Shown: piece by piece, positions 5,034 through 25,570 of the stretch
How positions within the stretch are numbered: the stretch's first letter is position 1
Layout: every line of letters begins with the position of its first letter
Assembly (NCBI GenBank): GCA_907165135.1
Contig: OU015567.1
Location: 3,968,001 to 4,032,000, forward strand
Direction of reading: 5' to 3'
DNA: 64,000 nt
DNA from: Oikopleura dioica
Lineage: Eukaryota > Animalia > Chordata
The notes under the pieces: model-generated
Database searches by the model: none
Told to the model about the DNA's origin: nothing
What the model saw: only the letters and a program-made list of their open reading frames with translations
Position numbers and translations under genes: made by a program

Positions 5034-6364
5034 ATGGAGAAAGTTGAGAAACTATCGAAGAAGAAAACGATCGGGCTTGGTAAAATTCTCGCCGGCCTTA
5101 TTGCCGGAAAACTTGTAACTTGCGTTATTTGAATCAAGATGCAGATCTTCCTGTTCATATGAAGAATTCTTCCAGTCAATAAAAATTTATTTGTTTCTTT
5201 ATCAAACCGAAAATTGGAGAACATCTGTATTTTCTATAAACACCCTCATCCGAATATCTCTCCCCAGATCATCAAAGCAAGTTCCATATCGTGCCCCGCG
5301 GGCGTTTCTCTCAGTCGTACTAAGAATAGCCTTTCATTTCTCTTTCTATTTTCTAATCATGTCTTTCCACCCGTTTTCGTAGAAAGAGAAATGCTAAGAA
5401 AACTCTACCACAACCTCACTCCAATAGGATGGTTTCTCGCCTTCATTACCAGTTTCTGTTGGAGAACAACTCTTCCGGAAGATTCAAAAGCATAAAACCA
5501 AAAGAAAAGCTTCTTCTTGTCTTTCCGATAATTCCGACAATTGAAAACTATGAAATGGTCAACGAGCAATTTTGCGGCCTCCTTCGCGAAAAATACGGAC
5601 AAATCGGCAACGACCTCGGCATTGAAATCAAAACGCTGTTTATTACTGAAGGAACAACAATCACCCAACAAGCAGCGAGAAAAGACTGGAATGTAATCAA
5701 CAAAATAAGCAGTACAATTGGAATCAAAATGGCCTACGCACCCGATCATATTTTTAACTTTTATCGAGACTTGAAAATTCAAGAAGATCCGCTCGACTTG
5801 CTTCGTTTTTTGCCCAAAAAAAGGATCGATTCAAACATTCTGCTTCTCAAATCCGCCAAGATGTCAATGGAGAAAGAGAATATCAAACTGCTGATGGATT
5901 CGATTAAGTCATCAGGAGTCGTTTGCGTCAGAAACTGCGGAAGACCAGAAGCCCTTGGACTCGACCCTCTTTCGCTCGAAAAACTCCGAGCGAAACTACC
6001 AGTCGTCAAGCCACAATTCCAGCCCAGCGAAACTCGCTACCTTCTGAAAGAATTCCTGACCGCAGCGAAAAAGTTTTTGACCCGCTCTCACAAGATCATT
6101 CCTCTCTCTTCCGCCGTTACAGTCATCGCGAACGAAAGGGCCCAATTCGGCTCGTATTACAAGCACGAGATGCCGGAATATATTCAGGCGTCAAATTTGA
6201 CCTACTGGATGATTTCGGATGAGCTTGCTCCGCAATACAAGAAGAATGTCCCGAAAAAGGAAAACATTGGGTTCCTCTTTTTGCCGGAAAATATTTCGAA
6301 GACAAAATGCAACGAGGCTGAAAGCGAATTCGTCTATTTGATCAAAACAGGATTGGATATATAA
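5034..6364 (+). CDS. Hypothetical protein
   Basis: 311-aa open frame 5429-6364 with protein-like composition. Upstream exon-like segments begin MEKVEKLSKKK at 5034; the 5' structure is uncertain. Confidence 0.5.
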
Positions 6365-19511: not shown

Positions 19512-20903
19512 TCAAAGAAAAAGAAAAAAGTGAACTGAAATGATCAAAAACAGAAGCAGTTTCGAAGCGGATGAATGATCCGATGAATTCGAGAAAATGA
19601 CGATTTCCCCTTGAATTTCCCTCAAATCAACGTCATCCAACAGAAATGCAGATACTTTTATGCTTTTTGAATATTTTTCCAAATTTTCGTCCCCTATGAA
19701 GATGGCTTTCCGGGTCGTCAACAGCTCTTTATTCCCTGAGAAGGATTAGTTGAATAAGCTTTACTGCAAAATTTACCAATTTGATTCTGGCAATCAGATT
19801 TTGCCTGGCAAAAGATCTCGTCATTTTTGCTGCACGCTCCAACAGATACTTCGAAAATGACTGTTTTCGAATTGGCGAAGGAAAAACTTTTCAGAATAAT
19901 CGTTTTTGCTTCCTCATCAATTGTGACAATTTCTTCAACTTCTTGCAGTGCGCATCCGTTTTCAATTAAGGAAACGGAGCTTGATAAATCGCCAGAACTT
20001 GCGGTAAGGGATTCAATTCGATAGTCGAGAGAGTCGACGAGTTTTTCCGGCTTGATAAGCATAAGTTGACCAAGATTCAAGTTTTTAAAGTTCGAATGAT
20101 CGCAGGCACCAGTGATTTCAAGAGAGCAGATTTGAAGGTCGAAAAATGATCTTGATTGAGAGGAATTTGACGAGACCGTGATTGCAGTTGTGTCCAGCGC
20201 GATTGTTGAGTTCAACAGGTCCCCGTTCTTTAATATTTTTTATGCGTTTAGTGGTATTCAGCGATGGCTCGTGGAGAAACTCATTAACCCTGCTTTTTCG
20301 ACTCAATAGCCACGCCCGTCGGTAACGTAGCGTGTGGTAACTCATGATCATTTCTTAGTTACCTCATGTCAGGGGCCATAAATATATTGATGGGGTAAAA
20401 AACAAAGCCTTTAAAATCAAAATTGATAAAAAAAATACCTGGAAACTGCATTCAAATTCTAATGCAGCAGTTTCTTCCTTTTCTTTTAATTTTGAATATT
20501 CTCCAGTCTCATTGACATATAAATGTTCTATCAAGGCATTTAACTTCCATCGATAGCTAAATCTGTCCCAAAAACCAGGCTGCACTTCCAAGTACGATCC
20601 GCACTCTTCGAACGGCAGAATAATTCCATCTTCGGTGAAATATTCAGCGCAATTTTGAAGAGAAAAAGTTGTGGAATTGTCAAACTCGCCGAAAAATTGG
20701 ACCGATAAATAATTGCTTCCGAATTGAAAATTATAACAACGCGGATTTAATGATATTCTGAATTCATCTTGCCCGCATTCAAGTTCGAAGATGTCTTCTC
20801 TTTCACAAGGAATATATTCTTGAGTTATAGTCGCAAGAGTCGATGTTTGCGACGAAAATACTGGTTTGAAAAGGAGGCTCTCGATAAAAACAAGTATTTT
20901 CAT
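19512..20903 (-). CDS. ZP-domain protein with hydrophobic (GPI/TM-like) C-terminus
   Basis: Signal-like start MKILVFIE, LEC..FRI, PFEECG, LEFECSF, LIENGC, IFEVSVGAC Cys pattern. Ends LLLFLIISVHFFLFL*. Confidence 0.7.
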
Positions 20904-21160
20904 GGTTTTTAAAAAAGCAAAGATGAAGAGAAAACCGAGACGGAAAATATGATCAATCATTATAATCGTAAAATTAAGCCGATCCCAAAGGAATGAGCTT
21001 ATTCAACTCCTTGTCTATTGACATAAAACCAGCAGAAACCAGCAAAAATCAGCAGGCTACTCTCGTAGAGCCCGGTTCGAAATCGTACTTATGAGCGAGT
21101 GAACTGGAACGATACCTATTGACCCTGTCTTTTCCAGCTGTTGGTGACGCCCGTTATTAA

Positions 21161-21914
21161 GGATATAGCCTGTAAAATTCAACTTTCGTAGCGGCTAAAC
21201 GCGAGGTCGGATCTTTTTCATTTCAAAAACAATCCTACCTAAAAATGCACGAAAAACTCAATTCTGGTATATTTTTTAAAATTTTCACCTAAATTTTTCT
21301 CTCTAGAGCGACTTGAAATCTTACGATCACGATTTCTCAAAATTTTTCCACTAATTCGCTAAAACTAAACCGTGTTCTCTGTTGTCATAATGCTAAGCTA
21401 GAAAATTGAGGGAATAAAATTCTCAAACTCGGTCATATTTTCATTCTAGTATTCTCCTCTTTCTTGCTCTTGCTTTTCTTCCCTGCGCGCTTTATCGCGT
21501 GTAGCCAATCAGAGCGCTCGCAAAAACACGCACGCTCTCCCGGAAAAGAGGAGGCGAGAGAGCGAGCACCGAGCGCAACGCTTTTTATAGCTTCTGCGCG
21601 CTGAGTTAGCCTCATGGAAAAGGCTGTAAAATCGGTTTCTTTCGGAATTAGAGAAAACTAAACCGTCAATTTTGTAGATAAAGGTCTAAAGAACCTATCT
21701 ATCGAAAAAACTCGACCGATTTAGTGAAAAATTTTCGAGGAATCGCGATCGTAAGATTTCAAATCGCTCTAGAGAGAAAAATTCAAGTAAAAATTTTTAA
21801 AAAAGTACCAAAATTGAATTCTTCGTCCATTTTTAGGTAGGATTGTACTTGAAATGAAAAAGATCCGACCTCGCGTTTAGCCGCTACGAAAGTTGAATTT
21901 TACAGGCTATATCC
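21161..21914. mobile_element. Non-autonomous TIR element, TTAA target duplication, GG termini (Kolobok-like)
   Basis: TTAA|GGATATAGCCTGTAAAATTC...GGCTATATCC|TTAA with long TIRs. A second copy lies at 57527-58279 in opposite orientation. Confidence 0.85.
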
Positions 21915-22027
21915 TTAATCCTGGTCACAAATTCTTCGATACTAAGTTTACTAAATCAGAACTCAGTTCATCAAACTAAATAAAGAAAAATATTGATTTT
22001 TTCATTATGAGCAAGAAGTAAGTTTAA

Positions 22028-22720
22028 GGGGGAGTATCACGCTTTTTTGAAAGTCGGTATTTTAATAATCTGTCTCGAGATTCTTGTAGCTTAGGCCTTG
22101 ACTAACAAAAAATATATTGAATTTTTTTCTTATTTTTCAGAAAAAGTACCCTAAAAATGACATTTAAAGTTGTTTACTCGCGCCTAGTGAAATTTTCCCG
22201 CGACATTCTGGATGAATTTCTTTTGCCCAGAGTCGTTTATTTCTTCATTTTTATGAATATTTTCAATCAGAGATAAATGTTTTCACAAGAAAATAGCAAA
22301 AAATAACCTATTCGTCACTTTTCACTGCTGATTGATTTCATGAAAATCTGCATTTTTGGAACCACTTCCTCAGACAAAAATTTTGTTAAGAATTTTTTGA
22401 GTTTTCAAATTTTCCTTCAAAACAGCCCTAGAGAAGGGGATGAACTTTCTAAAACCAGGAGCGACTTTATGATCGAACGTTAATTTCTTAGAAAAATTTC
22501 AATCCTCCGACAGGCCAAAATCGAGATTTTGTGAAGACGGGACTCAGTCTCAGCTCTCTACTGCGAAAACTGCTTGAGTAAATGAGAATCCGAGAAAAAC
22601 AGCCCTAGATATTGGTCATATCTAACTACTCGAGGAAGGATTTATTGGATACCTAAGGTTCTCTGGAAATGAGAGCAAATCTCCGACCCCCCTTTAGCAG
22701 AAAATGCGTGATACTCCCCC
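22028..22720. mobile_element. Second TTAA-targeting non-autonomous TIR element
   Basis: TTAA|GGGGGAGTATCACGC...GCGTGATACTCCCCC|TTAA (15-bp perfect TIR). Confidence 0.85.
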
Positions 22721-22782
22721 TTAAGTTATTATTATATAAATATCTTTTATATTTTCTTAATAATACTTTTTTATCAATTTAG

Positions 22783-23831
22783 GTCGCATTTCAAAAGGAG
22801 ATCCGAGCCCATCAAGATGAGCTCAAGGAGCACCCGGTTTACGAAAGCATCGATAGCCTAAAAGGCCTTCGACAATTTATGCGATTCCATGTCTTCTCAG
22901 TTTGGGGAAACATGAGTCTTGTGAAACGACTTCAAAGGGATCTTCTTTGTATGAATACTCCGTGGACTCCACCAAAGACAAAACAAACGGCTTCGATCAT
23001 TAATCAGGTAAAAAAATGATTATTGTCGTTTAGGTATAACGACTCCTTATTTTCAGTTGACTCCTGGAGAAGATTCAGCTTACGAGCTTTACGTAAAAGC
23101 TATGAACGAAATCGGATCAGGAAGGTTTAATTGTCCTAGATAGAATATTTTCAAAATTAACAAATATATTGAACCAGTGGAAAGACTCTACCGAAGTCAC
23201 TAAACTTGTTTCGATGATCGAGCGGGGCCAATCTTACGAAAACGCGCTAAACTCTCATCAATCCGTTTTCGGCGATACGATCCCAGAAGCAATCTACGAT
23301 CAGCTCCGCGAGACCTTGCGAATCGCCGAGAAGGGAAGCACTCATGAAGCGATGGCAGCACTTCTCTACAGCGAAGAAGAAGGGCTGACGATTCTCTTCC
23401 AGGACTTCCTCGACAACAAAATTTTTTCAAACGGAAAAAAATCAAACTCGCTTCATATTTATCTCCAGAAATACATGCATCTTGATCAAGAAAACTACCG
23501 TCAACATGCTGTTGCTGCCGTTAGGTTCGAAAGACAAGGAGATAAATGAAATAAAGATAATTTTTTTTCAGCGAAATTTGCGGCAAGGACGAGAAAAAGT
23601 GGAGTGAAGCGACAGCTGCGGCGAAAAGCGCGATTGAGATGAAAATTCACTTTTATGGCGAGATTTTGGAAAATCTGCCAAAGGTCGAGAAATGGCAGCA
23701 ACAAGGCGCGGATAACCCTGCAATGAAAAGGTCAAAATGAGAAGAGAATATTTTATCTTATTTTTGATTAAAGGATGCAAATGGTCCAGTTCTGGAATAT
23801 GTTCGCGAATCCAAATATGTTCGATGAGTAG
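22783..23831 (+). CDS. DUF3050-like (heme-oxygenase-like fold) protein, spliced; first exon/ATG unresolved
   Basis: [57 protein letters not shown] and [21 protein letters not shown] resemble my recollection of the bacterial DUF3050 pattern. GT-AG introns at 23008-23056, 23525-23571 and 23731-23773. Confidence 0.8.
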
Positions 23832-24173
23832 ACTCGATGATTATATTAGTTTATTGCTTCTTTACTTACCTGACCTTAAAGGCTACCTATCAAATAAATA
23901 ATAGACAATTCTCGTTCTCAAATCCATCTCATTGCAAAACGTGTGAAAAAACCCAAATAACCGGCAAAAAAATTCCCAGACAAGTCTTAGATCAAACATA
24001 ATTCTATTCTGTCTATCAAAAATGACCGCCCTTGCACCCCGCTCCCGCTGAGAAAACCGATTATAATTACACTCCCAGTCTTGCATAAGTAATCATCTGC
24101 GCCTTTATAACCGATCTCGTCGCTCCACTCCTCATCCAGTTTTTGAAAGAACCAAAAAGTAAAAAAAACAAAA

Positions 24174-25570
24174 ATGAAACTTTTCAAGTTTTTTTCCGTC
24201 GCCGGCTTCGCTGCTGCTCAATCGTCTCCTTGCACCTTGATCACTGCAACTTGCGATCACGAGGGCTTTCATGTTGTCCTCAGTGACACCTGCCGATCGA
24301 CCGACTACTCAGGCGTGACTGTCAATGAGGTTTATGCTTCCGGATGGACTCAGAACTCCACTCTCCCAGGTACGTCACTAATCAACAGAAAAATATGAAA
24401 TTTTTCGAGTCAAAATTGAATCCCCTTTTCAGTCTATGGCGCTCCAAGTGAAGCTCCATCAATGTGCCGCTTTTCCGTCGACCCCGCTGAATCGACACAG
24501 TACCTGATGGATTTCTCCTTCCTCGAGTGCGGCACTGACTACCCCGACTCCACCTCAACCGATTTGGTCTACCGGAACACCATCCAAGCGAATGAGTACT
24601 ACTCCGACATGCTCATGGGCGCCAAGATCCGCTACATGATCACGTGCACTGGCGATCGAGTCGCCGAAGTGACCAGTCAGACTGGCGACATCACCGCTGA
24701 AACCGAGTTGGTGACGACTGATAATCAGAACAAGCCCGCCAGCTGGGTCGACAACATTATCTCGATGAAATTTTACAACGATGCAGGTTACTCCGCGGAG
24801 ATGTCTGGCTCTACCAACGTCGTTCCCTTCGGCCACAACGTCTACACCTCCATCGAGCTCGACAACACCTGGGCCGACATCAACGTCAGAACCACCAAAT
24901 GCTGGGCAACTGAGTCCTCTGACTCAGCGTCGTCCCCTTCTTTTACGATCTTCGAGAACTCCTGCCCAACTCTTCAGTGGGTCAATGTTGATGACTCGAC
25001 AAATGGAGCTTCGGAAATTTCTCGATTCGACTTTAGATCGTTCAGATACCCCGGAAGCAATCAGATCCATCTTCATTGCGAGGTCTACATCTGCCACGAC
25101 GACGCCACCGATGTCTGCACCGTAACTTGCCCCTCCTCCCGCCGTCGAAGACGACAAGCCGACTTCGATTCCGACTTAACCACCCTCGCAAATGGCACCA
25201 TTATCCAGGACAACGGTCTTCCAGGTACTTTTGAGTTGCACATAAAAATTATCTTCATATATTTTTTTGTGAAAAGCTCACAAGAGACGCTCCGCTCGCT
25301 CGAACTCGCACCACCGCTCGAAAAGCCCTTCAACAAATGAATTATTATTTTTAGCTCCTAAGATTCTCTCTGCTACAATTGATGTTACCGACTTGGAAAC
25401 TCCCGTCGAAGCTCAACGGTAACGCTAGCAACCACTTATTTTTTAACCGTTTTCTAAGGGTCCAAAACAAGGTCGATCGACTTTCAGAGCTGCTTGGAAC
25501 AACCCGTTCGGAATTTTCCAAGCTCGCCCGAGTCATCAAGAAACTCCAGTCAGATGTCAATACCCTCTGA
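24174..25570 (+). CDS. Secreted ZP-domain protein with furin site and coiled-coil tail
   Basis: Signal MKLFKFFSVAGFAAA, ZP Cys pattern (FLECG, TKCWAT, FENSCP, HLHCEVYIC), SRRRRR site, last exon VQNKVDRLSELL...LQSDVNTL*. Confidence 0.85.

Follow-up and report, generated by a model that had tools for sequence, protein, structure and literature searches.

Among the known counterparts of the gene considered here is HamA of Burkholderia cenocepacia, which belongs to the same Pfam family and corresponds to its product over the whole length of the protein. In the crystal structure of HamA (9VWB) one iron is held by E84, H96 and H199, and H40, R167 and R240 were proposed as residues for 2-oxoglutarate (PMC12522199). 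The wider HDO ligand motif, as given for MboA, reads E-H-E-H-(D/E)-H (PMC13725569). With diiron and monoiron heme-oxygenase-like oxidases such as SznF, UndA, CADD and FlcD the protein described below would have in common, by homology, its fold family and the way in which the ligand-bearing helices are arranged. Two intact genes of this kind are carried by the larvacean Oikopleura dioica, namely chr2.g4743 (P0174) and PAR.g12748 (P0175) of the OKI2018_I69 assembly, with the Bergen E4YEW6-type sequences represented by cluster P0003; these paralogs keep 42 of 44 family-invariant columns together with the full E-H-E-H-D-H motif and are also found as intronless, mRNA-like contigs. Here, we describe a further family member located in a window of 64,000 nucleotides of O. 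dioica DNA (contig OU015567.1), to which all coordinates below refer. A preceding sequence-only reading had proposed that positions 22783-23831 encode an intron-containing DUF3050 gene with altered metal ligands, horizontally acquired and probably repurposed, and we addressed which of these statements withstand comparison with the relatives.

Family assignment and exon-intron structure

Pfam profile search of the exon translations returned four collinear pieces of PF11251 within 22783-23831 (+): profile positions 1-62 at 22783-23007 (+; E 8.8e-22, 78.3 bits), a weak match of positions 77-93 at 23057-23122 (+; 11.5 bits), positions 94-198 at 23178-23522 (+; E 1.7e-11, 44.7 bits) and positions 203-232 at 23573-23732 (+; E 1.1e-3, 19.1 bits), by which the proposed DUF3050 membership is borne out. 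PF11251 is DUF3050, named HamA_HO-like in the newer Pfam release. The translation of exon 1 matches residues 8-79 of 9VWB (E 3e-15), the spliced protein scores 285 bits against the intact paralog P0003, and the strings quoted earlier as altered motifs (SAYELY, SEE and one of 11 residues) are all present in the spliced translation. Such comparisons identify the gene as the third and strongly diverged member of a paralog set that includes the two intact HamA/DUF3050 genes of O. dioica. The window represents an animal chromosome and not contamination, because its 311-aa ORF at 5429-6361 is identical to a protein of O. dioica OKI2018_I69 chr2 (90% cluster mate Oidioi.mRNA.OKI2018_I69.chr2.g4660); location in the host chromosome, which is the one bearing intact P0174, and the presence of spliceosomal introns both hold for the DUF3050 gene.

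Exon 1 (22783-23007, +) spans 75 codons and retains the N-terminal helix motif with PWTPP, with D46G and F47N among its changes (HamA numbering). Intron 1 (23008-23056, +; GT-AG, 49 nt, phase 0) follows IINQ at a position common to the intact paralog: in L002, a genomic sequence of that paralog, the acceptor precedes IVLGEE at the same place. Exon 2 (23057-23120, +) keeps E84, has lost a loop of 13 aa and carries alanine for H96, and exon 3 (23185-23524, +) contains YSEEEG (R167E, with E168 kept), H199Y, conserved D203 and H207Y. Intron 3 (23525-23571, +; GT-AG, 47 nt, phase 2) lies before EICG, again at a position common to the intact paralog, and exon 4 (23572-23730, +), accommodating the last profile piece, bears R240K and W244Y. 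The 3′ end is predicted from the sequence: putative intron 4 (23731-23773, +; GT-AG, 43 nt), in a region that no relative spans, would lead to putative exon 5 (23774-23831, +) with a lineage-specific tail rich in Met, Phe and Asn and the stop codon TAG at 23829-23831, and if this intron is retained the frame ends at TGA 23738-23740. Alignment with the intact paralogs revealed no counterpart of this tail, and the window copy differs from them at the C-terminus in this respect. A polyadenylation-like AATAAA is present 62 nt past the stop (23893-23898, +).

Intron 2, which separates exons 2 and 3 (23121-23184, +; 64 nt, phase 1), has the termini GA-AG. The introns had been described as short GT-AG ones, and short introns do split the ORF, but the exon 2/3 intron departs from this type, because the GT at 23125 (phase 2) cannot be paired in frame with any AG; this applies to the window, to L002 and to L001, the genomic sequence most closely related to the window gene. 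The junction CAG|GAAnGT...AAAG| is the only one that stays in frame in all three genomic sequences; it yields G-S/A/T-D, which equals the conserved GAD/GTD of the family, and the intronless O. dioica contigs L004 and L005 of the intact paralog read GGAACAG|ATCC, matching the predicted splice. Introns of GA-AG type are frequent in O. dioica (PMC7072748). A canonical alternative joining TAC|GTAAAAG (23092/23093) to CAG|TGG (23177/23178) is in frame in the window only and cannot be taken as a conserved junction: in L001 the GT is missing and a TAA interrupts the frame ahead of exon 3. The ends of the GA-AG intron pair as a short stem, with 3 nt separating it from the 5′ splice site and 9 nt from the 3′ splice site both in the window and in L001, and between these two (23121-23184 versus L001 742-800) the stem has changed on both sides, the L002 version being weaker. 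Folding energies of whole introns are unremarkable (z from -0.03 to -1.2), and the terminal pairing and its register alone are notable.

Two irregularities were met in the intact copies. The public gene model of P0174 reads EVGTG--KVTKL where transcript-type sequences read EVGTDPIEVTKL, probably reflecting a GT donor forced at the GA-AG intron with the loss of four residues. In L002 (~649-707), a metagenome contig of the intact PAR-type paralog, and likewise in L003, the intron before EICG opens with GT and ends without AG as ...AAATTAAAA|TGAAATC, at the place where mRNA-like L004 and L005 read CTCAG|TGAAATC; this is apparently a GT-AA intron or a variant allele.

Loss of metal and 2-oxoglutarate residues

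Ligand positions were mapped by alignment of P0003 with 9VWB (E 9e-58) and then by alignments of the window protein. One of the ligands named in PMC12522199, ‘Glu184’, falls off any conserved column in 9VWB numbering, and E84, H96 and H199 were used together with conserved E168. In intact P0003 of O. dioica all six motif residues are preserved, as are those for 2-oxoglutarate. In the window protein the motif E-H-E-H-D-H is turned into E-A-E-Y-D-Y, all three of its histidines being replaced (H96A, H199Y and H207Y), and the ligand set expected of a catalytic HDO is thereby absent; a mono-iron or di-iron site like those of SznF, UndA, CADD and FlcD cannot form since these histidines are missing. 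At the 2-oxoglutarate site H40 is kept, R167 is replaced by E and R240 by K, which deprives the protein of a HamA-type arrangement. Compared with HamA, the window protein thus has in common the N-terminal helix motif with H40, as well as E84, E168 and D203, and differs by the five replacements listed, by D46G, F47N and W244Y (HamA numbering), and by deletion of the 13-aa active-site loop after E85 (P0003 residues ~86-98), close to the metal site. In the structure model of P0003 (all-helical, pLDDT 84) the deleted segment corresponds to the entire loop (residues 86-99) that joins helix 71-85 to helix 100-110. Alignment might have revealed intact ligands; it confirmed their alteration instead, with the refinement that SEE, regarded as a changed GRE ligand, has lost the arginine (R167E) and preserved the glutamate that serves as the ligand (E168).

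The changes extend beyond the ligands. Among 44 columns defined as invariant (conserved in at least 95% of 194 family members), 21 are changed in the window copy and two in the intact Oikopleura copies, and in L001 the changes affect 17 of the 41 columns covered. Pocket positions D46, F47, F153, F173, G176, P182 and W255 (P0003 numbering) are on the list of changed invariants. L001 shares with the window gene H96A, R167E, the loop deletion and GN in place of DF; it retains H199 and has N at 207, so that its motif reads E-A-E-H-D-N. Judging by these replacements, the window protein has probably been repurposed and would no longer bind iron.

Duplication, accelerated divergence and selection

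In the maximum-likelihood tree of 76 sequences the window gene groups with L001 (support 100) inside the Oikopleura clade (support 99). The stem leading to this pair accounts for 0.91 changes per site versus 0.03-0.12 on the branches of intact copies, being 8-30 times longer, and the path between the window gene and L001 (0.21) is comparable with that separating P0003 (Bergen-type) from P0174 (Okinawa) for the intact gene (~0.19). The terminal branch of the window gene (0.066) is shorter than that of L001 (0.14). The ratio dN/dS between the two was estimated as 0.117 (bootstrap 0.067-0.182; dS 0.75, 204 codons), which argues that the gene is not simply decaying. There was, therefore, a burst of sequence change followed by an ordinary rate under purifying selection since the split from L001. 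Three intron positions, that of the GA-AG intron included, are common to the window gene and the intact paralog, and therefore the window copy goes back to a duplication that took place among larvaceans.

We propose the following scheme. An intron-bearing DUF3050 gene of Oikopleura would have been duplicated, and the burst of changes would have stripped one copy of its metal site, both 2-oxoglutarate arginines and the 13-residue loop that links the E84 helix to the H96 helix, with the tail being new; purifying selection may then have retained this copy. Its product is expected to keep the seven-helix bundle of the heme-oxygenase-like fold, to be devoid of Fe/2-oxoglutarate or diiron oxygenase activity, and to act as a pseudoenzyme with a role in binding, scaffolding or regulation. 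Both features by which a pseudoenzyme is recognized are present, as the catalytic residues are lost and the coding sequence is under purifying selection (dN/dS 0.117 against L001). The earlier suggestion of a repurposed, non-catalytic or altered-metal protein gains support from the loss of histidines and 2-oxoglutarate arginines combined with this low ratio.

The 5′ end, inserted elements and traces of expression

The ORF that opens at 22783 lacks its own start codon. A conserved ATG mini-exon of 11 nt (exon 0, 22007-22017, +; ATG AGC AAG AA) with the donor GTAAGT is found upstream in the window as well as in L001, where 11 and 16 nt make up a continuous frame beginning MSKKSNFQK... Relative to L001, one nucleotide is lacking from the TTTC(C)AAAAG stretch of the window at 22789-22797 (TTTCAAAAG versus TTTCCAAAAG), so that translation across the canonical join ends at a stop after 29 codons. 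Extension of the mini-exon to 12 nt does not help, as GT occurs one base earlier and an in-frame join needs a TA donor or a TA acceptor. An indel introduced during assembly, a null allele or recourse to a different 5′ exon may account for the out-of-frame join. The OKI2018_I69 assembly is Nanopore-based (PMC8008620), and since the site is situated beside runs of T3 and A4 the single-nucleotide difference may be an assembly error.

Intron 0 (22018-22782, +), only 122 nt in L001, holds in the window a 701-bp element with terminal inverted repeats (MITE; 22024-22724, no strand assigned), which is piggyBac-like, flanked by TTAA and has 24-nt arms complementary by 96%. ATG-bearing exons inside this element, 22157-22168 or 22157-22186, could in principle be spliced in frame to exon 1. 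Another element of 764 bp (21156-21919), with two 203-nt inverted arms complementary by 91%, is located ~90 nt upstream of the ATG mini-exon. Secreted Cys-rich genes flank the DUF3050 gene on both sides (19718-20960, -, and 24174-25340, +), the latter encoding ZP-N/ZP-C domains, and genes with EGF repeats are found at ~42-46 kb; the two ORFs on the upstream side gave no Pfam match. The NRPS or N-oxygenase neighbours typical of ham, pvf and mgo clusters are absent around the window gene, their place being taken by ZP and EGF-repeat genes; in contrast to HamA, the gene is thus an animal, intron-bearing one that stands outside any NRPS or biosynthetic cluster.

A full-length protein of the window type was absent from the best 120 of 2795 matches in a set of 5.8 billion proteins, where its expected rank was fifth. 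Word searches with exons 1 and 3 revealed L001 as the sole relative in addition to one exon of intact type, and JGI metagenome contigs gave no match to the peptide patterns or to the DNA pattern of the splice junction. The intact copy, by contrast, is represented by many 1-kb intronless contigs, and the window copy has no transcript on record, a look-up of sequencing runs having listed none from RNA. Given these blank searches, the gene seems to be unannotated and rarely or weakly expressed. Among the family members collected, P0009 (JGI metagenome, 495 aa) has two DUF3050 domains, the first truncated and the second complete, in which identical segments recur; it is the product of tandem fusion or else an artefact of assembly.

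These features could be taken to mean that the copy, functional until a short time ago, died recently as a unitary pseudogene or null allele, the deletion of one nucleotide at codon 7 and the MITE in intron 0 having silenced the Okinawa allele. The out-of-frame ATG mini-exon with its stop after 29 codons, the insertion of 701 bp and the absence from public sets of a corresponding gene model or protein, despite annotation of this very chromosome, are all in line with such a fate. We nevertheless regard it as unlikely: the remaining 281 codons are open over five exons with all splice sites intact, the terminal branch of the window gene is shorter than that of L001, dN/dS is as low as 0.12, the indel beside homopolymer runs may come from the assembly procedure, and start codons within the MITE may in principle replace the lost one.

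Retained carboxylates and the fate of the pocket

A protein maintained by selection could also still be an enzyme, be it free of metal or served by a metal site rebuilt from carboxylates and tyrosines. E84, E168, D203 and H40 are kept both in the window protein and in L001, purifying selection is strong, and heme-oxygenase-like folds dispensing with a metal cofactor do exist, TenA being an example (PMC12522199). As three carboxylates and H40 are accompanied by tyrosines at two ligand positions in the window copy, residual metal binding may persist. The segment that once formed the metal helix points in the other direction. Between the window protein and L001 (KHMILDPEKNAKQ) only 5 of its 13 residues are identical compared with 84% overall, making it the least conserved 13-aa stretch (P 1.8e-4 for the fixed window, 0.035 after correction), although elsewhere in the DUF3050 family it is among the most conserved ones. 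This suggests that the metal site was lost rather than replaced by a new conserved one. Residues substituting for the histidines differ between the lineages (Y/H and Y/N, with H/I at 201), and the pocket invariants enumerated above, from D46 to W255, are changed. Retention of catalysis by such a pocket therefore appears quite improbable, and a repurposed protein that would no longer bind iron is the reading retained below.

Ancestry of the Oikopleura genes

Members of the family come overwhelmingly from bacteria, with at least 598 matches in species-representative bacterial genomes and a bacterial share of 92-95% in atlas clusters. Bacterial homologues are only 39-46% identical, no donor group stands out, and O. 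dioica is the only animal among the named matches (best 120 of 2795). The Oikopleura clade falls into a poorly resolved group of sequences, where its nearest neighbours of other origin include P0178 and P0006. Their contigs, carrying genes for histone, Snf7, DOT1, XRN1 and kinases in the case of P0178, and for PI-PLC and fatty-acid hydroxylase in the case of P0006, look like those of unicellular eukaryotes. Bacterial ancestry of the Oikopleura family as a whole is possible on the basis of these comparisons.

The claim of horizontal acquisition would pertain to the ancestor of all the Oikopleura genes and not to the window gene as such, which stems from duplication of an Oikopleura gene that already had introns (support 99, three shared introns). 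Despite the bacterial bulk of the family, a separate transfer that brought this DUF3050 gene straight from bacteria into the animal is already contradicted by the identity of the window protein to O. dioica paralogs (52-54% versus 30-34% to other members, two of them bacterial-type), by the support of 99 for its grouping with them and by the three shared introns, the GA-AG one included, and deserves hardly any credence.

Implications

Enzymes of the DUF3050/HamA family have obtained structure and activity only recently, and in bacteria. The history outlined above tentatively suggests, with arguments for and against nearly in balance, that a patchily inherited and possibly transferred oxygenase may have become a conserved iron-free animal protein with a new role. 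If so, this protein could be, for example, a partner or regulator of the two intact paralogs or a binder of small molecules, and a dead paralog with the HDO fold would, within the searches made, have been reported for the first time from a metazoan; the gene is missing from the current annotation of O. dioica. The case illustrates that a real gene can be missing from the public protein sets of an annotated genome where it combines a conserved GA-AG intron with a 5′ end that is uncertain. Two intact copies and one selected copy without ligands represent a natural experiment on what the fold may do without its metal, and the ligand-less copy may help to reveal what the intact animal genes do.
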